Shown here piece after piece: positions 25,960 to 52,377 of a DNA stretch of 64,000 nt (positions are counted from its first letter, which is position 1; the number at the start of each line of letters is the position of its first letter). The position numbers were made by a program, and so were the translations under genes. This stretch comes from Setoptus koraiensis. Taxonomy: Eukaryota > Animalia > Arthropoda. The stretch covers positions 20,832,001-20,896,000 of the forward strand of contig CM106586.1 in NCBI GenBank assembly GCA_048013815.1. The letters run 5' to 3'. A model generated the notes under the pieces. The model was not told the DNA's origin. It saw only the letters and a program-made list of their open reading frames with translations, and ran no database searches.

Positions 25960-26067
25960 AGTAATTGATTGACTTAAATAAGGTGATAATTTTTGTAATT
26001 CTCTGAAATAAACAATGACGTTTGTGGCGTAGTAGTCATGATGTTCTAACTACTTTATGACCGCAGA

Positions 26068-26763
26068 TAGGGTGTAATTGGACTTCTTATATACTTTCTG
26101 TGCACTCGCACATAGACATTTTTTTGCGTATGTACTCTGCACACTGCGGCTACAACGCGATTCGTCGAAAGGGCACAAAGTTTGCGCAGGGGGTATAATC
26201 TTTGAAGTTTCACCAGCTTGTGTGTGTTTGTATCCCCCTTCGTCTATGGACATAGTTTTCTCTTCACGGAATCAATAGTGCATTTTTCAAATTCTCGCGG
26301 TATGCGTACACGTATAGCCTGTATACAACTGCTTCGACTGTGCAATGCACTTCGAACATTCGAGACACTGAGCGCACAATATCGACCAAATTAGGCACAA
26401 ACACAATTTTTAGCTTTCTGTGTACAACAACTCGCACAGATAGTATAGGGTGTCCCAGCAAGTGCGTAATTTCTATTGATTATGCTACGCTGCCTTTGAC
26501 AGTATATTTTGCGCTCAACCAGAGATGACGCCATAAATGCACAGTTCGTATGCTTACGTTTATGACGTCGGTGGTGGTTTACTAATTTTGCGAGCACTGT
26601 GCAACATCCACCAGACACATATCAGGCCTAGAAATTGGAGCACAGGCTTTGCAACTCCACACTCTGTGCTGTGTGCCTAACACGGTGCCATACAGACTGC
26701 GTACTTGATATTATCAAGTTGATATAGACAGACCTCTATGGGATGTGAGATTACACCCAGTAC
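26068..26763. promoter_or_regulatory. Promoter cassette copy upstream of UBE2R (left motif 26068-26130, core 26374-26446, right motif 26746-26763)
   Basis: gggtgtaat...atactttctgtgcactcgcacat; a 73-nt core 58/73 identical without gaps to the reverse complement of 48491-48563; gagattacacccagta in the opposite orientation. Confidence 0.7.
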
Positions 26764-27950
26764 AAGATGATGTATGTGATTGAGCATTGATGGCATAAAA
26801 CATTTTCAGTAGTTCAAGTAATAGTATGTCTCTATTATTAGCGGCTGATAAACAATTGACTAGCAAATTTGAATTGGTTAGGAAGAAAGAGAGAAACCTT
26901 GGCAGTAGACAAAATGTTGTTGCACTCTTCGATCGATAAACATGTAGACATTTAATAAGTTTACAGTGGGCGGTACTTCTTGTTAGCCAAGTCGTGCCAA
27001 TAGCCTGACTGCCTAAATAATCATTATCATTGGTAACAAGCCTTTTTCACTATGTGTGAAACTTGTTGACGTGACATAAACCTATTGGGCCTATTAATAC
27101 TGGACATTTATAAGCATTATCATGAACTGAGCACCCTATGGCACAGCTAAATATTAGCCACTTTATTTACTTACTTATTCAAGCAGGCATTTGTAATTTT
27201 CTACAACTCATTCAGCTATGAAAAGTATGTTAAGGAAATGGATTGTAGCCTCATCACTGTCGTTGCCATAGTCGAGTTCACATGATGCCTGCCTTACCAA
27301 AATGGCAAAGCACCGTTTGTTCTGCCTTTCTTTGCAACCTGTCTGTCAAGGTTAGCGAGCTTGATAAAGGTAAAACAACAAAACGCAACGGATCACAATT
27401 GAGCAAGTCTTGTTGTATTGTTGTAAGCTGGTATCGTATCAATTGAAGGAACCTGACTTCCAAGTCTCTATTTTAGCCTACAACTTTCCTCTGCGTTACT
27501 TCCTTGATTCACGGTAATAATCTTTATATTAGAGTGTATTTAGAGATAATGTAAGGTACTACTTGTTACGTGCTCTGGCACAACTAGTAAGCTATCAAGA
27601 AAGTTACAAATCCTAACGGTTTTCTTGCCTTAGAAAGCAACCTTCAACTTGGTCGACGAGCAGAGAAATTTCAAGTTCAAGCTTGAATATTTTGAGCTAT
27701 ACTGAATGGAAAAGCTTGTAACTGTCGTGAGTGACTTGTTTTCACCAGACCATGTCAGGACGCAGAGTTGTAACGAAATACAATTAGACGGATAATACTT
27801 GATTGACAGTGCGTTTTCAACTTATTGATTATTTATTTCATACAGCATGATGAGTAATATAATCGGAGAATATATATTCAAATGACATAGCTAGTGGTGC
27901 ATTATTCAATAATTATTATTTGTCTTTTAAGCATATTCTTGAAAACTTCT

Positions 27951-30900
27951 TCAAGACAAATGGAAAGAGTTCCTTCCTTCGTTAGTTGATAATCGAAGTT
28001 TACACCTCATGATTTCGCATGAGCTATATTCTGGTAACTTGAGGTAATTGACACAGGTCATTACGCTAGGCAAGAAGTCGTCTGGATTCTCTCCTGGCTC
28101 AAGTGTTTTCCTGACGATAGTGAGAGGAGGCGATAGACTTTTTAAGCCACCAAATGGGAGTCGAGGTGATCCAGTGATAAATTGTAGGAATTTCCTTTGT
28201 TCATCGCTATTGTAAGAACTAAGTATCTCGAATAAATACTTTATCTGGATGCTCTCATGCGAAAATCCATGATCAGTCTTACAAGATTCCATTAACATTC
28301 TAACGTCCCAACTTTGATAGCCGGAACCGCAGAATAGTGAATCCAACTCTTCAGGATAGAATATTCGTAAATGATGTATCGGGAAAATAGATTCGAAGCC
28401 CGCCCTGAAGGCATCCATTTGACGACGAACGCCCTCAGTGAGAGTCCAATAGCGATGCAGTTTCACATATTGATCTAGATTTTCTAGTTTTGTAATCACA
28501 TCTTTACCACCTTTTTTGAGTTCAATGGATGAATATCCTGGTAGTGTAAAATCAATATTTAAATCTTCGATAGGACAGCCGTCCAATGTGAGAACCTCGG
28601 GACTAATATTGGCAAACAAGTCATCGGTAAATGTTGCAGAGCTATTGGTGATACTGCCAAGTTCTTGTCTTAGTTTATCCATGCTTTTAGCAGTGGTAAT
28701 AGTTGGATTATTTGAGCGGTTGAAATCATTGACATCTCTTTCTTGGTGGTTGATCATAATATTTCTTAATTCTGCTATACGATGCATCTGGAATAGGGAT
28801 CGTGACATAGTTGGGTCAATATGGGCCATATCTGATAAATCTAGCGATGCTTCTTGAGATAGCATCCACTTATAGAAGGGTTGACTGAAGGGTATATCAA
28901 TCTGAAATAGATGATGAAATTCACATAAACAGGAAATTCAAGATTAGTCTTTAGTAAGTAACAATTTAGATATGTATCGATTCGAAATCTACTGAATTTG
29001 AACTTACCATACGAGAATCCATCAATGCTTTGGCCATAAACTTGCCGAGAAGCTTGAAACGATTTCTTATCTTCGATACGTTGCCTATCTTTGCATTCCT
29101 AGCAAGAGGAGCAGGGAAGAGACCATTCGGTGAGTACATGTACTTCTTTTCATGGTCCATCTTAGGTGGGATCAACTGTTTCTGTTTTGTCTGATATGAT
29201 TGGTGGCTACTATTCTTATTATAATGACTATTTGAGTTATTGTTATTGAACTCATTATGATTATCGCGCGATGGTTCCCTAATGTCATCTAGATTGCTGA
29301 TTGTGTTATCAGCATTGAGCAGGGACACCGATGAAGACTCTTTTCCTTCACCGTGTTCATTAGATGGAACTAGAGGTGCGGACGCAGATACTACCTCACC
29401 TCTCCACAACTCCAGATCAGCTCGTTGCATCTCTCGTGACACAAGAGCATAAAATTCCAATGTTGGACCAAGACCTGTTCCAACTTCGTTCTCATACTGA
29501 ATATCCAAAACTGTTTTAGAGTTGGTGAGCTCGTTTAGAATTATCTCAGATTGGCGGAATAGATCGTCTCGGCTTACGGTCTTTCGACGTCTGTCTAGGC
29601 GTGGTGCGGCACGTTCATCTGAATTGCTCAACTCAGGGGTGCTATCCAATAGTCGTTGCAGTGCCCTGTCTCTATCAAAACTAGTAACGTAAAATAGTAA
29701 GTGCCGAGATTCGAAAGGTATCAAAAATGGACACGAGTACGCTAGCTGAGGCAACCAACTAGGAAGGTTCCCTGTCATAATAACTAATGGATCTTGGAGT
29801 TGTCTTGTGACCTTCGCTGCCAATTTTGAGTTAATAAACTCACTAGATGGTATAGCTGGGTGAGTCACAAAGCTAATGCAGTTTCTGTAAAACCATGACC
29901 AGTGCCTATTGATTCCAAAAATGGCTCTTAATAAGACAATTATTTCTATCGACGAGTCATGGACAGTTACATTCGGAGGTAATCTTGGACATAGATATTG
30001 GTCGATCGGAGAGGATACATTAGGGGTCTTTCCGTCGATCCAAAGTTCATCTTTCTTCCTGGTTACTGGACTTCTATGGTGATGAGAGGTAGCTAAGGTG
30101 GAGGACGAGTTTCTGATGCTATGACGCCGACCACAAGTAGTGGTAGAGGATGGAGACTGTTGCTGAACACTGCTTCCCGAAGCTATAGACTGACCCTGGT
30201 ACGGAACCGAAGCTATAGATTGCCCCTGGTACGGAACAGAAGCTAAAGACTGCCCCTGGTACGCAACTGAAGCTATAGACTGCCCCTGGTACGCAACTGA
30301 AGCTATAGACTGCCCCTGGTACGCAACCGAAGCATCATAAGTGGCATCTTGAAAATGCACTGGGTTCAATCTAAGATCTGAAGGGTTAGACTGATTTGAA
30401 GTCATCATTGAGTGAGCTCCCAAGCCACCTCTCATGTTGGAACTTCTTTTTTGCTGGTACATCTGGGAGTTAGAAGGAATAGACATGTTTGAATTTGCGG
30501 ACATTGATGAGGACTGATTACTGGTAGATGATTGGTCGGTGTAAGGCCTGTAATATATAACGTGAGTTTCAGTCCACATGTTGGAATTACCAACCACAGG
30601 TATATCCGAATCTTCAATATCCAAACCGTCGCCATTATCCGATAAGTTACTAAATTGTCTTATTGCTTGGTAAACAGTCATATTGTAGGGAAGAACATGT
30701 TCTCCGATGGATAATTGCAGCCGATGTCGTCCTTGAGGCTGCGTCATAACGACCATACTATCATCGAGATCGTCATCAGAATTATTATCATCCGAGTTGT
30801 CAGCGCTGTCGCGCATCTTGGCATAACCCCGTACAGTCAAGTATTTTTCTATAGCTTGAACTACAGCCAAAGGATCAATTTTGACTGGGCCTCCTCTCCA

Positions 30901-33900
30901 TCGTCTCAAATTATTACATTGAGGGTGACGCTGCAGATTACATTTCAACTGATGTGTGTTGAAAAATTTTAGAGCAGACACACCTCTTATATTGCCGTTA
31001 CCTAAACCGAAGAAGTCGTGGACTCTAACAGGGAATTGCTCGAGCTGGGAGATACAGGCATTTAGCTTCGCTACCAGTGCGGAAAATGGTGCTGTGTCCA
31101 TTTTGAGTTCTTGCTCATCGAGGAATAGTAGCATATGGCTGGGATCCTGAGACAACCCAAGAAACACTGATAAGAATGCTCGGATGCGATTGTCTCTGTG
31201 TGATGTGCCGTCTTGACCCTGGTAATTGTCTCCTTGACTTGGTTGGGGGCATTCTAGACTTGTCAAAAATTTAGTCAGTTTGGATACTAATCCACTATGT
31301 ATCAACTCGAATGAAGAAATATCACCTTCTAGTAAGACAGATTTAAGCTGCCTCAAAGCCTCCACAGTGCTAACTTGATCTTCTAGCATTTCCAAGGCGC
31401 AGGTCAATTTGTTCAATGTATCCATCGCAGGGTGCGGATCTTGAGAATTGATCGATGGAAAAGAGTCGCTAGTATTCAAAGATGACTCATGAGTCGAGTA
31501 TTTCTCTTCAAAAGCTAACGCCTGCTTAGCGACCCATTCTAGAACTCTCTCTTTTGTGTTGTTGATCGAAGGGTTAGTTCTTCCGAGGCTGGTGGAGCAC
31601 GAGCTACCAGCGCAGGCATTATCAGCAGGCAATGAGAGACAGTTGGTTCCGCGAGATGTTGAAGCGCTGTTAGCCGATGGTACGGAACTACTGCCTAAGC
31701 TGGCTCTATTTCCCCACCGACTCCACCTAGCTGGATGCAAGTTCGCTAATATATGTCTTCCTGTCGGAGGGTAAACTTGTGTGCTTTGGCTGAATCTGTG
31801 CTGTCCAGGATTAGTCGGGGAGAATGACGTAGCAGTATCAATTAGAATGTTTGAAAGATTAGATGATTGGTTGCAAATCGATTGGGCTGGAGCAGACGGT
31901 GATGACTGCTTTGCCAGATTCCTAAATTGATGCATAACTCCTTCGCGACGGAAGTAAATGGAAAATACGTCAGGTAGTTTATCCATTAATACCACAGCCA
32001 TTTGAATAGCACCAACAACTATTCTTTGATCTGATGAAGCTAACATAGTTGCTATATGTCCTGATACAGCATGATTCTTTAGTAGCACACGTAATAATTC
32101 AGTGGGAGTATAATAAACAATTCTTAACAGAGCACGTAAGCACTTATAACGCACTGAAGGTCCTGCTGAGCTGCTATATATTTCATATAGAATTCCAAAC
32201 AAAGAGCTAACAAAGTTATGCAGTATATCTTGGTTTTTCTTAATGTAAGCGATGCGTGGATCAGATTTCTGGCTAGGGTTGATATGTTGGTTATTAGAGT
32301 CCGCTGAAACGCTAGAAGTTGCTGGCTGGTAGTTAACTTTCCTATGTATGGGGCGAGACATCCCTGTGTCTTCATTGATTTGTTGCATGGTAGTGAAATC
32401 GATGCTGTACGTTTTACCCATAGTTACCAGACTAACATCCTCGTCTCCGGCACGATGGGCACTATCTATAACGTTGTTATCGATGCAATTGTACCTGTGC
32501 CAATTGCCCCTATCATCTTTCCACTGCCAAACCACAGACTCCTGTTGAGTCGAGCCTCCTCTACTAATCAATTGATCGATTGCGAACATACCATCTTCCG
32601 GAAGACGAGGCATCAGTTCAGCTATTAATGATGTTATTTCATAAAGTTCTTGTGGACTTCGGTTGACCAATTCAACATGCTCTACATTTTTAGCGTTCGC
32701 AGTGCAATTGGGTGATGATATAGAGTCTGTTAGAGAGGACGTGATAGAAATAACTGCAGATGTACCAACGTCCGATGAACTGTTTGAATTTACGATAGAT
32801 TGACTCGTCGTGTTCGTACTAGAGCTCTTAAATCCTACAAGAAGATATCGCAGCGTAGAAACTATATCTGAGGATAATAATTGAATAGCAATATCTGGGC
32901 AGCTGTGACACATGACTGCCAACATTCTGATGATCATAACAAATGTGCTAGTACTGATAATGGATGGAGTCGCTAGCAAAAGCTGCCCAAAGTTGACTAG
33001 CAGATTGTTACCCGCTACTTCCATCAGTATGTTTGGATCGCATTGATAATGTTCAATCAATCTAGAGAAGGCAAGACAGATGCTCTCCACGCTTTTCTTA
33101 TCCGTGTGTGTCAGGTGAGAGCTTAGTGTTGGTAAAGATTCTTGAATCTGAGGAAACTCCTCGATAGTAATATTTTGACAACAGTTCGCGGCAATGGCTA
33201 ATGCTGATCTTTGTGCATTAATGGAGAAAAAGTCCAAATATGTGAGGCAAGCTGAAACACCCTTCGCATTCAAGATAGCCTTGCTATGGCGACGCGAAAG
33301 CATCTCCAGAGCTGTCAGTGATTGTTCGGCCACATCCATACATTGTATTGCTTGAAGTTTTTCTAAAAAACTTGGAACAGCCTCAACTACAACTGACGCA
33401 GACCTTGGTAGGGATTCCATCATGTATGTTAGAGCTCGACAAGCATGATTCATAATATCAAAATTGTGTTCCATATTAAGAAGTTGGATTAATGAAGGCA
33501 CGGCTTGCTTCACAGGAAATCCAGCCAATGTATCCTCATTGCCCATGACAAGTAGTTGACACATTTCCATCACAGATTGGAGTTGTTGGCCCTCATCACC
33601 ATGAGTTTGGAGCCCTTGAACTAGCTGATGTGCCTTGCTAGATGAGCTAGAGCCGATAGTACGATGTAAAAGAGTCTGCATCCTGGGTCCTAAAGCACCA
33701 AGGAGGTGTGTCGGGACTCCTCTAGCCTCGAGGATGGCCTGCAATCGGCCCATTTCAACTTCATCGGGTTCATTGTCGCCAGTCACCATAGAAACTGCAG
33801 CGAAGGAAGGGATTGCATTAATTCCTGTAGCTTGATTATCTGTTGTTGCTGCTGCTGCAGTTGATGATGAGGCTGATGTTGAGGGAATTGACAAGGACGA

Positions 33901-34485
33901 TGACTGGGTGTTGCTGTGAGATGGACTATTCTTTGAGCTAGAAGAATAGTCCATCTCCCCTAAGTGGGCGCGAGACCTTTTACGAGGTGGCTCAATTGCA
34001 CTCGACGTCGGGCCTGAAGTTGAGGCTTTGTTTATGGTTTTGCTTTGTGAGGGCAAGTCTAGCACACTAGAACTAGTGTGAGACCTCGCACTTGCTGATT
34101 TACGATTCTGTTTACTACTAGCCGTCGGGGGGCCTGTGATTGTAGCTGTCTTAGTTGGGGCTCCTGATGACGATGAGCCACTAGTGCTAGATGCAGTATT
34201 ATTATTGCAAATAATTGGGACACTCAATGAACTGGTAGTGGTGCTGCTGCTGGTGCTAGTGGTGCTGCTAGTAATTACGCTGGCATTTACTGAAGACGAA
34301 TTAATAATCCTATTGCCACCCGATTCCGGAATCGCTACAATTGTTGATTGTTGTCCGCTTTGCGAGTCGCTATTGTTTGAGGATGATGTGGATTGCTGCG
34401 GATGTTGTTGGTTGCGATGGTGCTGCTGCTTCTGTAATTCAGACTGGCGACGCAACGCCCTTGAACGCGATCTGGTTACGATCAT
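27951..34485 (-). CDS. TRIP12: HECT E3 ubiquitin ligase TRIP12/Ufd4 homolog (exon 1 34485-29008, intron 29007-28902, exon 2 28901-27951)
   Basis: ARM-repeat region (MGRLQAILEARGVP...QQLQSVMEMCQLLVMGNEDTLAGF), WWE domain (WQWKDDRGNWHRY) and HECT domain (YENEVGTGLGPTLEFY...LPSVMTCVNYLKLPEYSS). Phase-0 intron ATG|gtaagt...tttcag|ATT. Confidence 0.95.
30179..30333 (-). repeat. Coding 30-bp minisatellite, 5 copies, (ASVAYQGQSI)n inside TRIP12
   Basis: gaagctatagactgcccctggtacgcaact is repeated 5 times with 1-3 substitutions per copy. Confidence 0.95.
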
Positions 34486-34758
34486 GAAGAGCGTCGTGCA
34501 GCCCTTATTTCAAATGTTTTATAGATAATAATATATGAGGATATCATAGATATTGTATACTATCATAAAGATATATTATTTGCAATATTATTTATATATT
34601 TATACATATACAGAATTCTATCCAATATGTTCAGCTAGTGCATATGTAGATATATATTATGTATATATATATTCTACAGTATTATATCTATGTTTGTATG
34701 TATATATATATATAATAATAATATTATAAATATGTGTATATGTATATCGTACGACGAA

Positions 34759-35040
34759 GAATGATGAAAGCTTTCCTGGTGAGTAGTGAACAAAGAGCAA
34801 GGGGGATAGAATGTTAGCGTGTGTAGTATTGGAAACGCACTCGCACACACACACACACAGACGGTCACAAGCTTAAAGCCCACAAATCAAAACACTCGCA
34901 CAGACAAACACATGAAAGAGTACGCTACTATACAAGTGACTTTAGGTACGCTTGTCTGCTTGTGCGTCAATAGCACACTAGTAAGCCAGGTCTGTTAGTC
35001 TGTGTATGTTGGTCTAAAGTGTTAGTTACACACATAGGGT
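34759..35040. repeat. Upstream block shared with the V-ATPase E 5' region (copy 2)
   Basis: Same orientation and similar position relative to a minus-strand ATG as 2645-2928. Confidence 0.88.
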
Positions 35041-35245
35041 AAAAAAAGCAAGCAATGAGCAATGCAGCCCGTCGGGTGTAACAAATATCTGAGACAAATA
35101 CTATTGTGGAACCTACCGTGCCCTTCACAGTTCATTATTGGCACAGAAACAGTATACTCTTTATAGGCTGCACAGAGAGCTTTTGTGTTAGTTTTGTGCG
35201 TATGTGTGTTTCGTTTTTGAATGTCCCCGTAGTTCACAAACTCCG

Positions 35246-35467
35246 CACTGGGTGTAATCAAACTTTTGTAATGTTCTCTGTGCGACGCACATAGCCCTTT
35301 TTGTGCGTGCGCACTCTTCAATTATACAGCACATTGCATTTAATGCGCATATAGATCGCTGGCACAAGACCAACTAAATTACGCACAAACACGTTTTTCA
35401 GCCCAGCATGTATAAAATTACGCACAACTCACACCACAAAGGTCTGTATCATATTATTTCACCCAGT
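35246..35467. promoter_or_regulatory. Promoter cassette copy in the TRIP12/CLPB head-to-head interval
   Basis: cactgggtgtaatca at 35246; core gcacaagaccaactaaattacgcacaaacacg at 35362 (33/41 identical to 26374); degenerate right end ttatttcacccagtac near 35454. Confidence 0.7.
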
Positions 35468-36218
35468 ACTGTTAACAGACGCATGCAACATTGCAAGTAT
35501 AGGGCGATTGTCTATAATTTGTAGAGCAAAATTTTTACTTACGGACCTCTCTCATACGACGGGTCGAGAATCAAACTCACTTTAGATCGGATTTTTCTTG
35601 CGGGGTGTGTCAGGCACCGTCTCTGATGCACCCCGAGGAATTCAGTACCTGTCCTAGTTCTTTTGTTTTTCCGCTTGGCGGCTATTTCTGATATCTCCTA
35701 AGGAGGCTTCTCATTCGTTATCTCTTATCATACTTGCGTGAATTTAGTTTCATGCTAGTGGGGTGCAAAACAAGTAACTTTAGGCACTTTGCGATCGCAA
35801 CATTTCTTCTAGATATCGCCCCAATGATAAGAAATCGTTTTATCAGCTTTGCTGTGGTGATATCACTAGGTGTTCTTTATTTGTTCTTTTCAATTGGTTC
35901 AATTCAGTTTTTCATCGAAATGGAGAAATCTTAATATCACAGGTCACCCTATCTAGTTAGTTGTTTTACGAAACTACTACATACGCGGAGGATGGTCAAA
36001 AGAAAAACATTCGCAGTTCAAGTCTCCCTCCTCATGCGCCGTATAAGCTCACAGTGTTGATGCATGTAAGAAATCATGTGTTACGCACAGCAGTCAGAAG
36101 TTCTGACTCACAACACAACAGAACCACCACAGACGCAACGGCATGGAAAATTCATGTAACGTTATGTATCAAGTACAACTATTTTGTTGCATCAACTTGT
36201 CAATTCCTCCAATCAGTG

Positions 36219-38637: not shown

Positions 38638-39006
38638 TAAAGTAAGCGCGAATCAATTAGCATGTTAATCAAGAGATGCAAGAAACCTATCATGTCAAAC
38701 AGATAAACTTCGATTAAAATTGAAACTTCTCATGATGGTATTAATCTAGCATTGTATACATTTCTCAAGTCATCTTTTCTAGTTGCGATCTAGTCGACGG
38801 TGTTGAACATCATTATCCACCATAATCAGATTGCTCTGATTTATTTTGCTTACATTGCCATAAGTTCGAAACCCGATATTTGTTGTCAACTGACACCTGT
38901 ATGATGTTTATTCACCACGTATGCTATGTAAAGGCTGACGTGACCAGCTGATTTGCTCATAAATTTTAGGAGATTCATCTAAATCAAAATACACCCGTGT
39001 GATAAA

Positions 39007-39585
39007 GGGGGTATCGACTTTTCGGAGCAGAAAAATCGAGATTTCCCAATTTTAAGTCTCCTACACGGTAGGTCATGCCAGACATGATGGCGGAATTTAT
39101 TTCCGGAACTGACCACCAGGTAGTGTTATATCGGAAAAAGAATGCGCCCAGTTAGTACACGGATATACTACAGCAGCGCGCACTTTTTCGCACTTTTCTC
39201 CAAACTTGAAATCACTCACTATTTGCGGTATTTCTCTCTAACTGTTGAACCCAAGAGCATGAATTTTTCACACGATATACTCTAGGGCGGCCTCTATCGT
39301 CTGAACTAAAATCAATTGCAAATTCGCACCCAATCGCTCACACTGTGCATACAAAAGCGCTGACTCATAGAGTGCATATAGGAACGAATAGTGAGCGATT
39401 TCATGTTTGGAGATAAGTGCGCGCTGCCACAGTATATCCGCGTAACTGTACGCGTTCTTCCACAGGTGTACCTGGTGGTCAGTTCCGGAAACAAATTTCG
39501 CCATCATGTCTGGCATGACCCACCGTGTAAGAGACTCAAAATAGCAAAATCTCGATTTTTCCACCCCAAAAAGTCGGAAAGCCCC
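39007..39585. mobile_element. Non-autonomous foldback element (MITE-like) with ~200-bp imperfect inverted arms
   Basis: Arms at ~39007-39225 and ~39385-39585. Two perfect 22-bp inverted pairs (39071-39092/39499-39520 and 39101-39122/39469-39490). Termini GGGG...CCCC flanked by taaa/ttaa. Confidence 0.85.
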
Positions 39586-40333: not shown

Positions 40334-41633
40334 ATGGCCCTCAGAGGCCTAAAGGTCATCGAAGTGGCTGGTCTGGCCCCAGCACCTTTCTGTGGGATGA
40401 TATTGAGTGATTTTGGTGCTGATGTTATACGAATAGAGCGGGTAAGTGGTGCGTTAGCATGAAAAAGTGATGAATCTTAACTGATGATTTATTGATTTAC
40501 ACAAACCACTCAATCCATTTTGTTTTCACTGCAGCCAGGATATTTTCAATTGGATTCATTAAAGCGTGGCAAAAGAACTGCTTCCATTGATCTGAAAAAT
40601 GAGAGGGGGAAGACTATCTTCCAAAGATTATGCACAAACTCCGATGTGCTCATCGAACCTTTTCGACCCGGGGTTATGGAACGTTTAGGTTTAGGGCCTT
40701 CATCATTGATGGATTTGAATAAACGCCTTATATATGCCAGATTATCTGGTTTCGGTCAACAGGGTGAGTACTAAACAAGGGTTCAAAGTGGCCTCTTTTG
40801 ATTCTGTTTTCTCATGTTTGGATTTTTTTTTTCGCTCAGGAAACTATGCAAATAAAGCTGGTCACGATCTTAATTATTTGGCCATATCTGGAGTGCTCTC
40901 ATTGATGTCCGGAAACGGCAAACCAACAGCACCTATCAATATGTTGGCCGACTTTGCAGGAGGGGGACAAGCATGTGCCTTGGGCATACTGACAGCCTTA
41001 TATGAAAGAAATACCTCTGGCCTGGGCCAGTTGATCGATGTCAGTATGGTCGAGGGCGCTAGATACGTTTCTAGCTACATGTGGCATACACAAAAGCCCG
41101 ATGCGCCTGCTTCCAGTTACATTTGGCCAAACAAGGGTGAGAAAGAGGCCAATCTTCTGGATGGGGGAGCTCCATTTTATACTGTATATAAGACTAAAGA
41201 TGGAAGATGGTTATCTGTAGCAGCTATAGAGCCTCAGTTTTATAAAGTGTTGCTTGGTGTTCTTGAGCTAAATGACAAAGAATTTTCCCAGTTCGAAATC
41301 GATCAATGGCCCGATCAGAAGAAAAAATTTTCCAGTATCTTTGCAACGAAATCGCTACATGATTGGACTAAAATATTCAGCGGTCATGATGCATGTGTCG
41401 AACCAGTACTTGAAATTGATGAGGCCGAAGAACATGACAAACAAAATGCGAGGCCATCTTTCTTAGACGATCATACGCCTAAACCTGCGCCATTACTGAG
41501 TAGGACTCCGGCGAAGCCCTCTTTGGTGGAGTCTAGATCTGGTGAACATACAGCTTCAGTATTGAAGGAGTTCGGTTATCTAGACAAGGAAATCGAGGAG
41601 CTCTCAAAAGATAAAGTTATTTACTGTGACTAG
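40334..41633 (+). CDS. AMACR: Alpha-methylacyl-CoA racemase (CoA-transferase family III); exons 40334-40441, 40535-40763, 40840-41633
   Basis: [36 protein letters not shown]|PG...[19 protein letters not shown]...[12 protein letters not shown]|[21 protein letters not shown]...[10 protein letters not shown]...[18 protein letters not shown]; frame-preserving introns. Confidence 0.93.
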
Positions 41634-42508
41634 AGTAAAGAGACACATTGGTGACGACCCATAATTGTAGTGTTGGTCGTTCTTTGAAAGCAAAAAGTTT
41701 TAGTAATAATCCTTGGTGCTTTCTCGGCAGTTTATTTGGTGTCCAAAGCAGTAATTTTATAATTCTAACTGCACAGAGCCTTAGAGTAGCGTTACATGTC
41801 TATACTATCTTCTTGTTTGAATTTTCAGTTGCATCTTTAGATCTTTCCTTCAGATCACCTAGTCTATTGTGATCGCATCCATCTCGATGCAACACACGGA
41901 AAGTTGGCATAATAGAGACCCGTTAAATAGAGGGCATCAAAAGTAATCTATGATAAATGAAATAAATAAAGAGTCCCATACTTTATTGTATAACTGAGCT
42001 ATGTAGACAGTAACACATATACATAATCAAGGCGTGTATATGTGTGACCTGTCATGTTACCACAAGTTCTATAAAAATTCTCTCTTCAAGCATTTCAAAT
42101 GAGTTCTGGTCATTGTTCAATTCTTTACAAAATCTATTCAGATCTTCGAATGAAAGATCCGAAGTTTGTCAGTGTTAAACATCCTGGGCGTAAACACTGA
42201 TTACCTGATTTATTGTTCATGTAAATACTCAGACTGTTTGTCCTAAACCTCATGACATGTACAGAACAGAATTCTCACTATTTCCTGAAGCCATTGTCCA
42301 CTAAAAGGGTACAATCTGTATTCTCGAAAATACCGTCTATACAACTATCGTTAGTTCGTTGCTATCTTTTTTCTCTCCTTCATCCGTACTGACGCGATAC
42401 TAACTTCGGCATACTACGGTTGTGATCGTCGATTTTTTCGAATACCAATTTAAGTATTGTTTATCGTTACGTAATCAACAAGATTTAACTCGAATGTATT
42501 AAACTATT

Positions 42509-44746
42509 ATGGGTCCTCAAGTACCTAAGGGAGTATTGATTGCCCATCGCATCTATTTATTATCAACGAGCTTTGTGATACTAACGGCAGTGACATCCAA
42601 TACTCTGGTTCAAATTTGTTTATGTGGACAAGCAAAATATAGTACGAGAGCTGTACATAATAACCTTAAGACCAATGTATCTACTGTGCAATCAGAATCT
42701 AACGAAACAGTGCCGATAATCAGTTATAGCAACAATCCATTCACAAGTAGTGGTTCTGCAAGTCTCAGTTCAAATATACAAACGCTAAATCAGCAACAAC
42801 AGACTCGTTCAACAGAGCAAGATTTGATCGATGATTCAGCCCCTCCATCCTTGTTGGGGACTTCTCTTGAATCGATAGTTGGCAAGAGCAAATTATCTGA
42901 CACGCGATTCAAGAATTATCAGTCGGGTGTTCCTAAAAATGAGGGCCTGACAGTATGGTCGATACATTACGATGAAGATTCATCTACCGGAACCAGTGTT
43001 TCATCAAAAGCGCCTTTCGAGACCACTACCACGTCCTATAATTTCCTGAACAACCTCACATATTTCGATGATGATAAAGTTGCTGCAAAAGGTGTTAAAA
43101 ATGATAACAACAGTGGCACAACAACTAATTCGAATCAGCTATTGTGGAACTTGATTCAGACTAATAATAAAGATTATGATCGTTCCCCTTCGAAACTGAG
43201 TGGTAACTCAATCTTGCCATTGGAAAACTACAAACAAACAAGTTACCCTTTAAGATTAAGAGATCACTTATCTACTGTGATAACAAATTCTGCTCCATCT
43301 GCTAACGCAATTGAGGGTGGCCAAGGAGGTTCCGGTTCTTCATACAGCCATGAACCATTGAAAGTAGTTAATTCACGCATAGATTCGTATAACAATCAAG
43401 CAACTAGATACAGTAACGTCATAAGCACTTCCGGTCTGAAAAATGGCCAACAACAAAGACGGAGAAAACGGAAGAGGCCAGTGTCATCGAATCATCATGT
43501 CGATGCTGATTTCAACTATGATCAATACTACAAAAAGCAATCTGATAGTAAATATGATCAAGATACCAACAATCGTGACACAAGCTATGCCAATTTTTAC
43601 GCTCCCGAAGCAACCTCAACTAACAGAAACAAACATAGATCAGCTTACTACAACAAGAATGATGGTCAACCAATTATAGAATCGTATCAGATAGACAATC
43701 ATGATGACATTGGCGATTATGACACCGATACTACACAAGATGATGCATCGCCAGCGAGTCAGCTAAATAAGTTGAATAAAAAATTTTATCATTCGCCTGA
43801 TTATGACCAAATTGGTGGTTCCAAGTATCAAAAGACATCCAATATTAGACCCTATATTTCAAGTGTAACAGCCGATAACTTACGTTATCGTCCCTATGAA
43901 TCTTTGTATCATAAAGATGAAGGTTATCCCATCGCAGATAGCATATATTCTGGTAAAGGCAGAGATTCAGTTTATCCACCTTATAATCAATATAATTCTG
44001 CTTCCATGATACAATCCTATCATGAGCCATCATCGAAACTAGACCGTCATCATTACGATTACATACCGCCTCGGCTAGTTTCTTCCTCGAATGGAGACTA
44101 TGCAATAAGCGCAAAAGCTAGAGATTACATGCAAATGCTACCGGCTAAACATGCCACAATACATATACATAAGTCGGTAGCCAGCAAAAAGAAAAGCTAC
44201 GATAAATACATTTGGCCTTTGGTTGGAGGAGCAGTTGTTCTACTACTCGGCTTTCTCATCCTATCAAACATTCTACTATCTTTGCCACTCTTGGCATTAG
44301 GTGCTCAATCATTGTTTGGTGGTGGAGGTGGTCAACAACAATTGATACCTGTCTACAATATATCACAAGCTGCGAGGCCAACTGGCCGTAAAAAGAGACG
44401 GCGTCGTCGAAAGCGAGAAGCAAAAGCAGATATCCTGAAATTAGGTGATGGTGTCGATGTCAGGGAATTGCTGAAACAAATTCAACAAGCTATCGAGAAG
44501 GTGACCAGCGATGGTAATCAGCAACACGACAATAGTATTATGACCGATATAAGCAACAAAGGAATACGTCTGATGAGGCAGGCTATGATGTTTGTTCAAC
44601 CTGTTGATAACGTAACAATGAATCTTCCGTTGAATGCACTTTACTATGGTACGGCCAACAACAATCCTATTTCAATTCCAAACGCCAGTCCACCTCAGAT
44701 GGCCTCAAATGTTAACACTGGTTCTAAACTGGGATTTTGCATGTAG
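42509..44746 (+). CDS. Uncharacterised 745-aa precursor: N-terminal hydrophobic segment, long Ser/Asn/Tyr/Asp-rich region, one hydrophobic helix, polybasic (furin-like) sites
   Basis: ATG-initiated 2.2-kb ORF with IYLLSTSFVILTAVTS, YIWPLVGGAVVLLLGFLILSNILLSLPLLALG, RRRKRKR and GRKKRRRRRKRE. Confidence 0.75.
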   Translation: MGPQVPKGVLIAHRIYLLSTSFVILTAVTSNTLVQICLCGQAKYSTRAVHNNLKTNVSTVQSESNETVPIISYSNNPFTSSGSASLSSNIQTLNQQQQTRSTEQDLIDDSAPPSLLGTSLESIVGKSKLSDTRFKNYQSGVPKNEGLTVWSIHYDEDSSTGTSVSSKAPFETTTTSYNFLNNLTYFDDDKVAAKGVKNDNNSGTTTNSNQLLWNLIQTNNKDYDRSPSKLSGNSILPLENYKQTSYPLRLRDHLSTVITNSAPSANAIEGGQGGSGSSYSHEPLKVVNSRIDSYNNQATRYSNVISTSGLKNGQQQRRRKRKRPVSSNHHVDADFNYDQYYKKQSDSKYDQDTNNRDTSYANFYAPEATSTNRNKHRSAYYNKNDGQPIIESYQIDNHDDIGDYDTDTTQDDASPASQLNKLNKKFYHSPDYDQIGGSKYQKTSNIRPYISSVTADNLRYRPYESLYHKDEGYPIADSIYSGKGRDSVYPPYNQYNSASMIQSYHEPSSKLDRHHYDYIPPRLVSSSNGDYAISAKARDYMQMLPAKHATIHIHKSVASKKKSYDKYIWPLVGGAVVLLLGFLILSNILLSLPLLALGAQSLFGGGGGQQQLIPVYNISQAARPTGRKKRRRRRKREAKADILKLGDGVDVRELLKQIQQAIEKVTSDGNQQHDNSIMTDISNKGIRLMRQAMMFVQPVDNVTMNLPLNALYYGTANNNPISIPNASPPQMASNVNTGSKLGFCM

Positions 44747-44949
44747 AATGTTGTTCGTGGCTTCGCCTAAATAAGTAAACTATTTGATTGTAAACTAATA
44801 GCGCTGAATCAATGATCATTTTATTAATTAAAATTGCCTCGACAAGTAATTTTTTACAATAATCATGATGCCTAGGATTGGCATACTGTATACAAGGAGA
44901 CGAGTCAGAATGAATTTATTTGCATAATCAATTGAATGAATTCTCATTA

Positions 44950-45648
44950 CTAGGAGATGGTTCCTTCAGCCAGGTCAATAATTTTTGGTAAATGTATCTG
45001 CTTCCTTAACAGCTCATTCTGAGTCCAAAGCAATAATTTGATTAATGTAACCAGACGGGGCTTTGGAGTGGTGATTGATCCATTTCTTTGGATTTTTAGT
45101 ATGATATTATTTATCTCGGATGCTAATTTTTGACGGTGAGAAATCTGCAGTAGCTCGGCATATGGACTGGTGTCTGGTTTGTCGAATGCCAACAATACCA
45201 TAGTGCGCTCTAATTCGCTTATCTGGGTCTCAGATTCAACATTGACCAGGTTACTGACATAGTCCAAGACTTCGTTGATTTTTTGTTTACGAATAAGTTC
45301 TTTCAGATGTTGTAATTGAAGTTTAAAGTAGATGTCTTTATGATTAGCGAATATTTCAGGATAATATTTATTGATCAATGCCTCGCCACTTAGGATTTCG
45401 CCATCCTCAAGCCTCGTCTTAATTTGCACCCGCCTGTCTAACAACTCTGGATCTTCACCTGCAGCAGGGCAATCTTCTTGTTCTAGATGTTCCATGTCTA
45501 TTCCGGCTTCTTCTTTGAATTTTTCAGCTGCCTCCTTGAACCCCTCGTGTATCAAGTAGTCCATTATAATCTTATTCATCTCAATGCGATTTATAGATAT
45601 CGAATCCAACTGACTGAACCACTGTTGTTTATTGGGTTGTGACTGCAT
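44950..45648 (-). CDS. GID8: GID8/TWA1 subunit of the CTLH E3 ligase (LisH-CTLH-CRA)
   Basis: MNKIIMDYLIHEGFKEAAEKFKEEAG (LisH), YPEIF...IYFKLQLQHLKELIR (CTLH), ELERTMVLLAFDKPDTSPYAELL...RQKLASEIN...PRLVTLIKLLLWTQNEL (CRA). First ATG at 45648. Confidence 0.88.
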   Translation of the reverse strand: MQSQPNKQQWFSQLDSISINRIEMNKIIMDYLIHEGFKEAAEKFKEEAGIDMEHLEQEDCPAAGEDPELLDRRVQIKTRLEDGEILSGEALINKYYPEIFANHKDIYFKLQLQHLKELIRKQKINEVLDYVSNLVNVESETQISELERTMVLLAFDKPDTSPYAELLQISHRQKLASEINNIILKIQRNGSITTPKPRLVTLIKLLLWTQNELLRKQIHLPKIIDLAEGTIS

Positions 45649-46210
45649 TGTATGATGCACCTCGTGGCAAAATTATGAATTTGGATTGTTTTGTGAAAAT
45701 ATAGGGGATCTGAGCTTGATCTGTAAGGTCTTATGAAATTGACCAACATTCACCAACTGCTGGTAAACAGAGAGATACAAATGGTTGTTCAGAATAAATA
45801 AGCATGTAATAGTAGTAGTGATAGATCTTTGATAAACATAATTGTGAAGAATAATAGTTGTTGTATGTTAGTCGATTATGTTGAAACAGATTGTTTTTTC
45901 CATACCAGTAAACGTAGAATATCCTACCACTTACAATTGTTTGGCAATAAAAACTGCTCTCATGTCCGCAGATTTGTCGAGAATCAGCCGGTAGTGCAGA
46001 TTTTCCTCTCTTTTTGTTTGTGTTTTGCAACTGCAGATAACTGACGGTGCAGCTCATCCTGCAGTTATCGGAAGCTGTAGTGTGCCTATGTGTCACAACT
46101 TATTGCATTTTTACTAGCAAAGAAATCACGAATTGGTCAGTATTTGTTTACCATTACATATTTTTTTACTCAAAACTTCCAGATCATCAATCATAGGATC
46201 AATCTTAATC

Positions 46211-47122
46211 ATGGAGGCCACATCTGAGATTTGGATCAATGCGATGGCTTCAGTTCTTTTCATAAGTGCAGCCCCAGCTCTATTATTGATAATATTGCCT
46301 ATAGATCATAGAGTGGAACACCAGATGCATCTGAAAAAACTGCTTGCTATAGCTGCCGGCTGTCTACTTGGAGATGCTTTTCTCCACCTTATACCACAAT
46401 CGAGAGAAAACTCGGAGGACCATCACGACCATGAACATGAACATCATGATCATCATCATGACCACGATCACGGCCACAACCACGGTCATGGCCATAGTCA
46501 TAGTCACGGCCATGGCCATGGGCACTCTCATGATATGTCAGGTCTGAAAATTTTGTCCGGAATGATGGTATTTCTTATCATGGAGAAGCTTATCTATGCC
46601 ATCAAACCTCATCTAGGACACGATCATTCCCATGGGACTGAAAAAGCAAAGAAAAAGAAAAACGATGATTACAAGGGGATCCAAGTATCTGGATGGTTGA
46701 ATTTGACAGCAGACTTCCTGCATAATTTCACCGATGGATTAGCTATTGGAGCATCTTTTTTGGCTGGCAACAAGGTTGGACTCAGTACATCATTTGCTAT
46801 ATTCTTGCATGAGGTTCCTCATGAGATTGGAGACTACGCTATTCTGATTCAATCAGGTTGTACCAAAAAGAAAGCGATCTTACTACAATTAGTGACTGCG
46901 CTCGGTGCATGCTCTGGGACCCTGCTGAGTCTTTATTTGGGCTCATTAGGTGACGAGACAAGTTCCTGGGTTTTACCATTCACCGCTGGAGGCTTTATCT
47001 ACATAGCTACTGTCCATCTCATTCCACAACTGAAAAGTTCCAACTTTAGACAAACCATCTGGGAGCTGGCAGGTATAGTTGGGGGAGTGGGCATTATGTA
47101 CTCAATGGCGCTCCTCGAATAA
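46211..47122 (+). CDS. SLC39A7: ZIP (SLC39) zinc transporter, ZIP7/KE4/Catsup-like, intronless
   Basis: LFISAAP, AAGCLLGDAFLHLIP, His-rich loop, GWLNLTADFLHNFTDGLAIGASF, HEVPHEIGDYAILIQSGC, WVLPFTAGGFIYIATV. Confidence 0.88.
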   Translation: MEATSEIWINAMASVLFISAAPALLLIILPIDHRVEHQMHLKKLLAIAAGCLLGDAFLHLIPQSRENSEDHHDHEHEHHDHHHDHDHGHNHGHGHSHSHGHGHGHSHDMSGLKILSGMMVFLIMEKLIYAIKPHLGHDHSHGTEKAKKKKNDDYKGIQVSGWLNLTADFLHNFTDGLAIGASFLAGNKVGLSTSFAIFLHEVPHEIGDYAILIQSGCTKKKAILLQLVTALGACSGTLLSLYLGSLGDETSSWVLPFTAGGFIYIATVHLIPQLKSSNFRQTIWELAGIVGGVGIMYSMALLE

Positions 47123-47214
47123 ATATGCGACAGTTTAATGCACTATTGATTAAAAACATAACTCGATATACTCCTTTACAATTCATACTGAAATGTGACT
47201 TTAATTTTAGAATA

Positions 47215-48192
47215 CTACATCTCAAAATCAATGTACTTTGAGTCGAACCTATGCACACGGACGTAACCGTCCTCTCCGCCACTCGCATATCCATAACCAT
47301 CAGGGTGAAATGCAAGAGAATTGATTGGACCGAAATGACCTTTTACACGAGCAAATTCTTCTTCATATATCATGTGGAAAAATCTAGCTTCAAATTTACC
47401 AGACTGCGTTGCTGTTGTCGTGACCTCCATCGCCTCTTGACCACCTCCCACAACCACATGTTCTCTGATAGGCGATATGGCAGCGGAATTTACTGGCCTG
47501 TCTGTCTGGTATGTTTTTAGTTTATCCAGTGTTTCCATATCGAACAATTTGGCTGTTCTATCTTTGCTTGCAGTTATAAACATGGTGCAATCTTGGCTCG
47601 CTTGTAAATCAGTTAATGCTGAAGAGTGAGCTTGAGGACTAACAACAAGTTGCTCACCTGGATTTCTTATATCCCATTTAATCAGAGTTCCAGACTCGTT
47701 ACCTGTTACAAATGTTCTGTCTAAAGGTCCCCAAAGAGAACAGGTCGGTTTCTCTTTTTTCTCTAGTTCATGCTTGAATGCTGCGTTGTCCTCGTGTAGA
47801 TGTGAAGGGTCATTAATGTCTATAATAACTAATTTGGGGTTGACATTCATGGTACTATCCGTTGTATAAAGGACTTGTTTTCCTGAGAAGCTGAAAGAAC
47901 AACTCCTGGTTGCATTTTTGGTTTCAACCCTAGAAATTAGTTTGCCTGTTTCGGCGTCCCAAATAAATAAAGCCTCAGAACCGGCACCGATGACCGTTGT
48001 TGTGGAATAGTCGACGTCAATCGACCAGACTACACCGTTCGGTACTGAGTAATTGCCGATACGTTGTCCTGTTTGAGAATACCACACACTTGGAATAGTA
48101 TCCTTAGCAGCACTAAAAATCAGATCTCCGTCGGCATTGAATCGAATTTTCGTTATAGCTCTGGTGTGACCGTGTAGAGCTAGAGGCTTCAT
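47215..48192 (-). CDS. EIF3I: Eukaryotic translation initiation factor 3 subunit I (WD40); CDS intronless, with a 5'UTR intron at 48305-48221
   Basis: MKPLALHGHTRAITKIRFNADGDLIF...DRPVNSAAISP..HVVVGGGQEAMEVTTT...FEARFFH..EEEFARVKGHFGPINSLAFHPDG..YASGGEDGYVRVH. Confidence 0.95.
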   Translation of the reverse strand: MKPLALHGHTRAITKIRFNADGDLIFSAAKDTIPSVWYSQTGQRIGNYSVPNGVVWSIDVDYSTTTVIGAGSEALFIWDAETGKLISRVETKNATRSCSFSFSGKQVLYTTDSTMNVNPKLVIIDINDPSHLHEDNAAFKHELEKKEKPTCSLWGPLDRTFVTGNESGTLIKWDIRNPGEQLVVSPQAHSSALTDLQASQDCTMFITASKDRTAKLFDMETLDKLKTYQTDRPVNSAAISPIREHVVVGGGQEAMEVTTTATQSGKFEARFFHMIYEEEFARVKGHFGPINSLAFHPDGYGYASGGEDGYVRVHRFDSKYIDFEM

Positions 48193-48464
48193 ATTGTATT
48201 TCTATTTCCTGGCCTTTATCCTAGAGAATACAGAATAATTTTCTTTGTATATATATTGTATTTTATATAAATCAACAAGAGCGCTTATCTTTAATTTGGC
48301 CTTACTTGGTGTAATCTCGCTTATTTAATACTGCCTGTGCACACGCACATAAACTTATTGGGTACTTCCGCTGTGCTCTCATAGTCAGCATTTTTTCATT
48401 GTTGAATTACGCGCCATGAGGTTTCAAAAATGAGATCAACTGACAAGGTAGGCTAACGCAAATC

Positions 48465-48670
48465 GTACTGGGTGTAATAACAGTTCTTGCATACTTTCTG
48501 TGCGAGTTTTTGTGCACACAAAGCTGGAGTTCATGTCTGTGCGTAATTTAGTCAATTTTGTGCATGCCATCTGAATGTATTTTGTACTATTCGTCTATAT
48601 GGATAAAGCACAAGGAGGTTTTTTGTGCGTGGGCACAGACAGTATGAAAGAAGTGAGATTACACCCAGTA
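48465..48670. promoter_or_regulatory. Promoter cassette with inverted ~38-bp ends in the eIF3i/PSMC4 bidirectional promoter
   Basis: tactgggtgtaataacagttcttgcatactttctgtgc (48466) versus the reverse complement of the right end, tactgggtgtaatctcacttctttcatactgtctgtgc (ends 48670). Confidence 0.75.

Positions 48671-50412: not shown

Positions 50413-52377
<1,965 letters not shown>

Follow-up and report, generated by a model that had tools for sequence, protein, structure and literature searches.

The arthropod initiator is TCAGT, and the first T of a TATA box usually lies at −31/−30 relative to the transcription start site (+1). Drosophila promoters built on the Ohler 1 and Ohler 6 motifs show dispersed initiation and loose motif positions, and the consensus sequences that Ohler gave in 2002 reportedly read YGGTCACACTR and KTYRGTATWTTT. 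At housekeeping genes of this fly the two motifs form an ordered and oriented module, with Ohler 6 at −60 to −41 and Ohler 1 at −20 to −1 (PMC2728527).

Here we describe a module of about 55–75 bp that recurs upstream of housekeeping genes in the genome of an eriophyoid mite, in which genes are compact and nearly intronless. The analysis covered one 64-kb window (the whole stretch of DNA to which all coordinates refer) and ~28 kb of the closest available relative. To our knowledge no arthropod genomes are smaller than those of eriophyoids, in which spacers measure ~0.5 kb, and we found no eriophyoid mite promoter motif in the literature searched. The module comprises three boxes at constant spacing: an upstream palindrome, TGTGC-N4-GCACA (box 1); a TATA-like RGTAT..AAGAAG (box 2), which takes the canonical form TATATAAG only in the copy upstream of a UBC E2 gene; and GATTACACCCAGT (box 3), in which the nearly invariant 8-bp ATTACACC directly abuts CAGT.

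Like the Drosophila module, the mite module unites two motifs in a set order and orientation at housekeeping genes, and the likeness extends to sequence in an RGTAT core upstream and in the agreement of GATTACACC with GGTCACACT at 6/9 positions. However, the consensus sequences are not matched, the downstream box agreeing at those 6/9 positions and the upstream box only in RGTAT. The mite spacing is moreover rigid and shorter (~18 bp centre to centre), the palindromic and TATA-like boxes are additions, and the mite copies are kin by descent. In the Ohler module the start follows immediately after the downstream motif, and the same may hold for the downstream box of the mite. An AT-rich box upstream of CAGT, in a directional arrangement ~110 nt before the ATG, also recalls an ordinary TATA/initiator promoter. 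Unlike in such a promoter, in every copy the first T of the mite box lies at −24 from the A of CAGT, a canonical TATA is missing from 4/5 copies, and the ATTACACC before CAGT is nearly invariant, which is nothing that a plain initiator needs.

Recurrence and constant architecture of the module

A first-pass annotation of this DNA had described a recurrent directional promoter element, and the motif is indeed enriched. In the window ATTACACC matches at 10 places where 1.87 would be expected, a number reached in 0/100 shuffles; the 15-mer GAGATTACACCCAGT has 7 matches with no more than three mismatches (1.55 expected); and, tandem repeats aside, the most strongly over-represented dispersed 9-mers are ATTACACCC, ACACCCAGT and GATTACACC, at 15–20 times expectation. 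A profile scan of the window (nhmmer) defined a family of five full copies of ~75 bp each (Table 1), among which the long-version copy was aligned over 48464-48537, whereas the supposedly strong copies at 3351 and 26746 proved to be partial only, 3351-3383(-) and 26744-26762(+) having just the 3' box and a TATA-like region. When a profile made from four full copies was searched for the fifth, each full copy was recovered by the other four with E values of 3e-8 to 3e-14. The ATTACACC matches at 21432 and 50729 are chance-like, the latter lying inside the GPI ORF.

In 5/5 full copies GCACAG is followed, after 19 nt, by ATTACACC, with no indels, and the terminal 12–13 bp are the best-conserved stretch among copies. 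Similarity between copies is block-wise, and some spacer positions that vary among copies are kept between orthologues. Full and partial copies are all non-coding, in DNA where ORFs fill ~63% of the first 52 kb, and no copy was found in introns, 3' regions or convergent spacers of the window. The gene-nearest copies all point toward their gene, and the module ends 105 nt before the ATG in UBC (25959), 109 nt before it in eIF3i (48192) and 116 nt before it in PSMC4 (48788). The gene-ward orientation that had been claimed is seen at UBC, TRIP12, eIF3i, PSMC4, V-ATPase E, CLPB and GPI; for the partial copy at 26750(+) no downstream ORF was found. Three of the module carriers are ubiquitin-proteasome genes (n = 3).

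The module is restricted to this lineage in the material searched, zero copies having turned up in ~89 kb of DNA from four further eriophyoid species. A scan of JGI metagenome contigs gave no match and is uninformative.

Table 1. Module copies and associated features in the window
Coordinates	Strand	Feature	Evidence
3346..3383	-	Partial copy, TATA-less version + GTGATTACACCCAGTGC, V-ATPase E	87% identity over 38 bp to 35241-35278
26064..26140	-	Full module, UBC E2 gene	nhmmer E 1.5e-17; leave-one-out E 3e-11
26388..26447	+	Long-version arm, 5' part only (AAATTAGGCACAAACA ... CTCGCACAGATAGTAT)	without ATTACACC box
26737..26765	+	Partial copy, TATA-like region + GAGATTACACCCAGTA	motif and profile scans
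35244..35318	-	Full module, TRIP12, left arm of 35-kb unit	nhmmer E 7e-17
35319..35372	.	Centre of 35-kb unit	homologous to 48-kb unit centre (alignment)
35373..35467	+	Degenerate long-version arm facing CLPB, ends in ATTTCACCCAGTA	aligns with 48549-48464(-)
48301..48374	-	Full module, eIF3i, outer left arm of eIF3i-PSMC4 palindrome	nhmmer E 1e-19
48392..48431	.	Conserved core of eIF3i-PSMC4 spacer, outside motif	90% identity vs 25-45% elsewhere in spacer
48464..48549	-	Long-version copy, left arm of 48-kb unit	nhmmer E 1e-15
48601..48672	+	Full module, PSMC4, right arm of 48-kb unit	nhmmer E 1.4e-19
50255..50263	+	Weak GATTACACC, upstream of GPI	TCAGT 8 nt later

Conservation of the copies in the related species

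Three loci of the related species (L001, L004 and L005) were compared with the window. Unconstrained spacer DNA is 20–53% identical between the two mites, and the module copies stand out from it as islands of 85–100% conservation, with other arms at 79–88%. The TRIP12 copy is identical at 70/75 positions (93%), and the next 45 bp past CAGT at 38%. Judged from these alignments, the module copies are clearly under purifying selection. Since the UBC and TRIP12 copies predate the split and are still alike, their likeness has been maintained and not merely inherited.

The UBC copy has the 3' box ATTACACCCTAT, without CAGT; the related species matches its TATA box and palindrome throughout (100%) and has 2 changes in its ATTACACC box. 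Facing away from this copy is the 5' part of a long-version arm, whose conservation in the related species amounts to 85% and which lies in a stretch (26374-26446) that matches 48563-48491 with 79% identity over 73 bp (blastn). The partial copy beyond it keeps its box in the related species, where an 8-bp insertion precedes CAGT and the TATA box is better, and the DNA downstream of it (26790-27680) is 82–96% conserved. The V-ATPase E copy lies ~900 nt upstream of the ATG (2449) and is nearest in sequence to the TRIP12 copy; the upstream regions of these two genes have in common the 3' box and a 216-bp block, 2641-2846 matching 34755-34958.

The weak copies listed in the first-pass annotation fared unevenly. 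The CLPB sequence is a real, if degenerate, arm. The GPI site is poorly conserved, with 6/9 positions kept in the related species (nearby, 50285-50320 is strongly conserved), and from its sequence its membership of the family appears doubtful. The site at 21949 is a marginal match, and no Pfam family was found in the adjacent ORF that had been called MEP-1.

Paired copies in the TRIP12–CLPB and eIF3i–PSMC4 spacers

Two units of ~200 bp with opposed copies had been claimed, and they do correspond over their full length: an alignment of 35244-35470 with 48463-48673 in reverse complement spans the whole of both units (~225 bp), each of which is bounded by inverted repeats with CAGTA at their ends. 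In the 48-kb unit the two arms are 87% complementary over 38 nt (the right arm at 48633-48670), the arms of the 35-kb unit form a weaker inverted repeat, and hairpin folding of the unit gives z = −6.2. No partner lies at unit distance from the single copies at UBC, eIF3i and V-ATPase E. Flanking TA dinucleotides, also claimed, are present on both sides of the 48-kb unit (48466/48670), but the 35-kb unit is flanked by CA...TA in the window and by TA...TA only in the related species. Opposed copies that end in CAGTA produce TA...TA automatically.

The 35-kb unit lies between the TRIP12 ORF, which starts at 34485, and the CLPB ORF, which runs from 35961. Its centre is 88% and its CLPB arm 79% conserved in the related species, which carries an intact ATTACACCCAGT in that arm; conservation falls to ~31% about 55 bp beyond the arm (from ~35521).

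The eIF3i–PSMC4 spacer is a nested 600-bp palindrome that extends to both ATGs, such that the two genes carry inverted copies of one another's core promoter, 5' UTR and even first codons. The eIF3i copy is paired with 48620-48685 in an inverted repeat of 66 nt (80% complementary), and the long-version copy, with its motif at 48471(-), is a second, internal minus-strand copy upstream of eIF3i. Head-to-head housekeeping genes 0.5–1.5 kb apart are also found at mammalian bidirectional promoters of the GABP/YY1 type, and the centre of the mite spacer carries candidate sites of both kinds, namely an ETS-like CGGAAGT in the aligned block ~48360-48443, just left of the conserved core, and a YY1-like ATGGCG on the minus strand within the core. 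The inverted copying of core promoters, 5' UTRs and first codons is, however, a difference, and we know of no ordinary bidirectional promoter with such inverted copies.

The related species has none of the three copies found in this spacer, so that the module at this locus is either dispensable there or recently gained; a mobile element fits this absence as well as promoter turnover does. In three copy pairs homology reaches past the supposed element ends, to differing extents, into 5' UTRs and even start codons, and extended flanking homology is seen in four pairs. Such homology beyond the boxes supports descent of the copies by duplication.

Function and origin of the module

A lineage-specific core-promoter grammar, which the first-pass annotation had offered as the alternative to a mobile element, fits the evidence best, given the constant spacing, position, gene-ward orientation and conservation islands. 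We put at roughly 55% the probability that the module is a composite core promoter of this mite lineage, serving housekeeping genes and copied between genes. TGTGC-N4-GCACA would then be the probable site of a dimeric factor, GATTACACCCAGT may be a factor site adjoining an initiator-like CAGT, and transcription would begin at CAGT or a few bases after it. A start near CAGT would give 5' UTRs of ~105–116 nt for UBC, eIF3i and PSMC4. Promoter plus leader segments of various lengths would have been duplicated among unrelated genes, often by inverted duplication that left a palindromic spacer between divergent genes, and the ~225-bp units with their TIR-like ends would be bidirectional promoters, the inverted ends being two outward-facing core promoters. 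Against a core promoter stands the TATA-like box, which is 24 nt before the A of CAGT when 30–31 is usual; if it is a TATA box at all, transcription should start a few bases downstream of that A.

Transposition offers another account of origin, one that is compatible with promoter function and that we regard as possible though doubtful: the ~225-bp unit would be a (former) non-autonomous DNA transposon, a MITE with TA target duplication exapted as a bidirectional promoter, its terminal inverted repeats being outward-facing promoters and the single copies half-elements or solo ends. Stowaway/Tc1-mariner-type MITEs have TA duplications. As in promoter-resident MITEs (mimp, PMC3599309; Stowaway), the unit is short and TA-flanked, has inverted ends and hairpin potential, recurs in promoters, and is present at one locus and absent there in a relative; mimp elements at Fusarium effector genes (PMC3599309) are a precedent for residence in promoters. 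The end-to-end homology of the two units stops at CAGTAC on both sides, the terminal 12–13 bp are the best conserved in the family, the inverted ends are extensive (38 nt and 66 nt) with a strong hairpin score, TA is found on both sides at the 48-kb unit and, in the related species, at the 35-kb unit, and the 48-kb unit is missing from that species together with the nearby single copy. However, the TA belongs to the conserved CAGT(A/G), some copies having CAGTG, and so gives no independent evidence of target duplication. Nor is there a clean empty site, the relative having ~330 bp of unrelated sequence against ~317 bp in the window; local alignment scores at this locus are no better than those of shuffles, and neutral DNA being saturated, a clean empty site may no longer be recognisable. 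The ends of the mite unit are themselves promoter boxes, the copies in the window occur only near promoters, and homology past the ends varies in extent from pair to pair, which points to segmental copying and not to a fixed-end element. The two arms of one unit also differ, one being the short and the other the long version, and, with the TRIP12 and UBC copies predating a split that has left neutral DNA saturated, there is no sign of a recent burst. With TA within CAGTA, no empty site and homology beyond the ends, the MITE-derived, TA-duplicating origin first put forward was not established. Similarly possible though doubtful is a bidirectional promoter cassette that is itself mobile. Such a foldback element, ~225 bp long and flanked by TA, would have outward-firing core promoters as its inverted ends, and by insertion between genes, or by inverted duplication, it would supply or replace housekeeping promoters.

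That the module is a transcribed leader exon, ending ACACCCA/GTAAG and spliced to gene-specific second exons, with the promoter further upstream, we consider improbable. GTAAGG/GTAAGC directly follows the motif at eIF3i and PSMC4, an acceptor-like YTTAG/GA lies 60–90 nt downstream in both genes and both species, and it is between donor and acceptor that the two palindrome arms resemble each other least; a repeated element with two copies ending in a good 5' splice site also recalls introners and spliced leaders. However, the splice donor that had been noted at the end of the motif is confined to these 2/6 copies, the others reading GTGCGG, GTGCAG, GTACAA and GTACGA. The UBC copy lacks a donor altogether, and its internal canonical TATA box would need a separate explanation. 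In the related species eIF3i has no donor upstream of the acceptor-like site. RNA contigs of the mite are available at a depth of ~2 (three raw-read RNA runs contained zero reads from the mite), and one of them covers the 5' end of PSMC4. This contig (run X1; depth 2) starts 70 nt downstream of CAGT, is continuous over 48738-48789 and is then correctly spliced at the ATG intron, from 48789 to 48877; it runs unspliced through the proposed acceptor, reaching 22 nt upstream of it, with no joint and no loose end. The available evidence gives no sign of trans-splicing. Likewise improbable is independent convergence, in which unrelated promoters each evolved identical factor sites without copying. 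The block-wise similarity and the copy-specific spacer positions kept between orthologues speak for it, but several pairs have significant similarity outside the boxes, including the unit centre and the 5' UTRs.

A three-box module as rigid as this one, in 55–75 bp, would offer a handle on how transcription is specified in very little DNA. The module is common to unrelated housekeeping genes and is maintained by selection, yet at one locus it has been gained or lost between related species. Its copies would be candidate constitutive promoters for genetic tools yet to be developed in eriophyoids, which are crop pests. Were the copying to prove general, it would represent an unusual course of promoter evolution, either through capture by inverted duplication or through a mobile element that carries promoters.

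Recurrence and architecture of the module

ATTACACC, the core of the 3' box, has 10 matches in the window against 1.87 expected, and a 15-mer allowing up to three mismatches has 7 against 1.55 expected, which bears out the recurrent motif described in the first-pass annotation. Tandem repeats aside, no dispersed 9-mers in the window are more strongly over-represented than the words of this motif. When the copies are aligned, five have ~55-75 bp in common and three boxes can be recognized: the palindrome TGTGC-N4-GCACA (box 1), a TATA-like RGTAT..AAGAAG that reads TATATAAG at the UBC gene (box 2), and GATTACACCCAGT (box 3). The gap from GCACAG to ATTACACC is exactly 19 nt in all five full copies. 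A profile search of the window returned these five with E values of 1e-15 to 1e-20, and leave-one-out profiles built from the other four copies recovered each of them (E 3e-8 to 3e-14). Shuffling and the leave-one-out results rule out chance or low complexity as the source of the recurrence. The palindromes have diverged from perfect symmetry (73-87%), and their layout is found again in an independent assembly of the related species, the closest available eriophyoid relative; this rules out an assembly artefact.

Copies of the module, partial sites and opposed units
Feature	Position	Strand	Location
Full copy	26064-26140	-	Upstream of UBC E2 gene
Full copy	35244-35318	-	Upstream of TRIP12
Full copy	48301-48374	-	Upstream of eIF3i
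Second eIF3i copy	48464-48537	-	Upstream of eIF3i
Full copy	48601-48672	+	Upstream of PSMC4
Site with part of the module	3351-3383		
Site with part of the module	26388-26447		
Site with part of the module	26744-26762		
35-kb unit	35244-35470		TRIP12/CLPB spacer
48-kb unit	48463-48673		eIF3i/PSMC4 spacer

The copy nearest each gene start points at that gene, as had been claimed, although direction alone is weak evidence since three of the loci are divergent-gene spacers, where either direction faces a gene. From the end of the motif to the ATG is 105 nt at UBC, 109 nt at eIF3i and 116 nt at PSMC4, and ~760 nt at TRIP12 and ~900 nt at V-ATPase E. None of the copies lies within a long ORF, though long ORFs cover 63% of the examined sequence.

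The eIF3i ORF (47215-48192, minus strand) has as its best named relatives Aceria tosichella (67%) and Fragariocoptes setiger (66%), both eriophyoid mites. The first-pass annotation set the motif against Drosophila elements, but the host is a mite. Genes in the window are densely packed and mainly single ORFs, in agreement with the streamlined genomes that PMC7738191 reports for eriophyoid mites. Domains of V-ATPase subunits E and B occur in a single uninterrupted 696-aa ORF (213-2303; Pfam). An 8-bp tandem array (CACGCTGG-type) occupies 60990-61080 in a GC-rich region at 58-62 kb, and a 30-bp periodic repeat lies within the TRIP12 ORF (30194-30320). Scanning the window for Rfam families and tRNAs produced no match, so the module drives no known small RNA, and an snRNA-type (PSE plus TATA) promoter was set aside on the same ground.

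Conservation and turnover among eriophyoid mites

The related species was sampled by three contigs of one public run (L001, L004 and L005). Its proteins are 79-98% identical to those of the window and its unconstrained spacer DNA only 20-53% identical, so neutral DNA is saturated between the two. The TRIP12 copy is nevertheless identical at 70 of 75 positions, whereas the 45 bp directly after CAGT fall to 38%. In the UBC copy the palindrome and TATA box are perfectly kept, and the ATTACACC box, already atypical, carries two changes. Identity is 85% in the arm at 26388-26447, 88% in the centre of the 35-kb unit and 79% in the CLPB arm, where ATTACACCCAGT is still intact in the related species; the 26750 copy is retained with an 8-bp insertion before CAGT. 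Judged from this comparison, the conserved module islands are evidently under purifying selection. Since the UBC and TRIP12 copies predate the split of the two species yet are still alike, their likeness is maintained by common function and does not just reflect recent origin.

Two other stretches are conserved nearby. Between the 26750(+) copy and the TRIP12 stop codon, ~900 bp of non-coding DNA without an ORF (26790-27680) are 82-96% conserved; they could belong to a long 3' UTR of TRIP12 or to a non-coding transcript expressed from the 26750 copy. Upstream of GPI the best-conserved element is not the weak GATTACACC copy but ATCCACGCGCTAGATGTCATTG (50285-50320), which may be a promoter element of another kind.

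All three module copies are missing from the related species' eIF3i-PSMC4 spacer, where identity is 25-45% and local alignment scores lie within the shuffle range. The conserved part is a central block, aligned over ~48360-48443 and 90% identical at 48392-48431; within the aligned block we read two putative sites, CGGAAGT (ETS-like) and ATGGCG (YY1-like). When the related-species spacer was compared with the window by blastn and by global and local alignment, neither a clean empty site nor a significant match outside this block was found; the related species has ~330 bp and the window ~317 bp for the same stretch, and the copies may have been gained in the one species or lost in the other. Of the words sampled from window 46000-51900, runs X3-X7 contain 54-97%. 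The spacer (window 48190-48790; L001 5999-6870) is a nested palindrome throughout, and in both species PSMC4 opens with the start of eIF3i (ATG, intron, MKPL.LHG-type codons). The ATG-proximal intron of eIF3i itself is kept in the related species and absent from the window species, which indicates a precise intron loss.

Among four more distant eriophyoid species (L002, L007/L008, L009 and L010), no copy was found in ~89 kb, which takes in two orthologous PSMC4-eIF3i spacers (L002 and L010), and k-mer counts at these loci gave no comparable recurrent motif of their own. On the sequences compared, the module is restricted to the mite lineage of the window. A metagenome scan with a 23-base pattern of the module returned zero matches.

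Core promoter, inverted element or leader exon

Selective conservation, fixed spacing and placement before gene starts are what the core-promoter grammar offered as an alternative in the first-pass annotation would predict, and we take as most likely (probability about 0.55) the reading of the module as a composite focused core promoter. A factor would bind the palindrome TGTGC-N4-GCACA, the AT-rich box would support a TBP-like interaction, and a sequence-specific factor would occupy ATTACACC directly before the start site, by analogy with Motif 1/M1BP. In Drosophila housekeeping promoters Motif 1/M1BP lies at -20..-1 and Ohler 6 further upstream (PMC2728527). In order, orientation and gene class the module fits an ordered housekeeping promoter module, but it differs from the Ohler 6/1 pair in sequence and from canonical TATA/Inr in spacing, so that it belongs to neither. 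One misfit with a focused promoter is the distance of 24 nt from the start of the TATA-like box to the A of CAGT, where 30-31 nt would be expected; transcription may begin a few bases past CAGT, or this box may be something other than a TATA box. Nothing relevant was found in literature searches with the motif string or on promoter motifs of eriophyoids and chelicerates, and no description of an eriophyoid promoter motif was found.

The opposed ~200-bp units are genuine: the 35-kb unit and the reverse complement of the 48-kb unit align over their full length (~225 bp), centre included, and on either side their similarity ends at CAGTAC. The 48-kb unit folds as a hairpin (z = -6.2), its arms being 87% complementary over 38 nt. 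Inverted complementary ends, a hairpin and homology that stops at CAGTAC do resemble a MITE, as had been proposed, but an origin from such an element is unproven, and each feature can also be explained by promoter function. On that account, two core promoters facing outward form the inverted ends; the flanking TA combines the final base of CAGT with the favoured next base, so that opposed copies yield TA...TA automatically; and gene-specific transcripts would start at the sharp ends. Other pairs of copies share homology of widely differing extents, unlike copies of an element whose ends are fixed. A nested 600-bp palindrome that extends to the ATGs contains the eIF3i and PSMC4 copies, and in the related species the palindrome extends into the first intron and first eight codons; the V-ATPase E and TRIP12 copies have the 3' box in common plus a 216-bp block further downstream; and 26374-26446 matches 48563-48491. 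Such variable extents point to repeated copying of promoter and leader segments. The module resembles promoter-resident MITEs such as the Fusarium mimp elements (PMC3599309), but of the defining transposon features neither an empty site in the related species nor copies away from promoter regions of the window were found.

The first-pass annotation also had the motif close a leader exon at a splice donor, a reading we consider unlikely. GTAAG follows the motif at eIF3i and PSMC4 only; elsewhere the next bases are GTGCGG, GTGCAG, GTACAA or GTACGA, and the UBC copy is without any GT. The RNA evidence consists of five low-depth contigs of run X1. One of them covers the 5' end of PSMC4: the ATG intron (48789 to 48877, GT..AG) has been spliced out of it, and at the proposed acceptor it reads straight through for a further 22 nt upstream, showing neither a joint nor an unmatched tail; at a depth of ~2 this argues weakly against a leader intron. 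In addition, the related species lacks a donor ahead of the corresponding acceptor-like site in eIF3i. Three raw-read RNA runs under the same species label, which is probably not the mite's (we guess a host plant), contained no mite reads.

Copied and inverted segments in the window

Two local cases of inverted promoter/5' duplicates were confirmed, eIF3i/PSMC4 and DDX5-like helicase/OGDH. The latter is a ~1-kb inverted copy (8388-9425 versus 19697-18571, 76-90% identity) that covers the 5' regions and initial coding parts of both the helicase gene and OGDH, which lies 10 kb away. In the 5' region of TRIP12, a block at 34880-35198 is 91-100% identical to the related species, compared with 84-90% in coding DNA, and its 216-bp core (34755-34958) recurs upstream of V-ATPase E (2641-2846) at 74% identity. 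This block has neither a long ORF nor an Rfam match, and a structured-RNA reading was dropped because its folding energy is ordinary (z -0.1 to -2.3); it could be a common 5' UTR exon or regulatory block.

A 190-bp repeat in inverted orientation (15328-15512 versus 24806-24625, 76% identity), located in the 3'-end spacers downstream of OGDH and of UBC, could be a true dispersed repeat or a MITE with no relation to the promoter module. The spacer before the CoA-transferase gene holds a 220-bp inverted repeat (39005-39223 versus 39587-39387, 78% identity, arms ~160 bp apart) and may be another palindromic spacer.

If palindromic promoter sharing is general, the cassette would be one instance of a genome-wide way to make or replace promoters.
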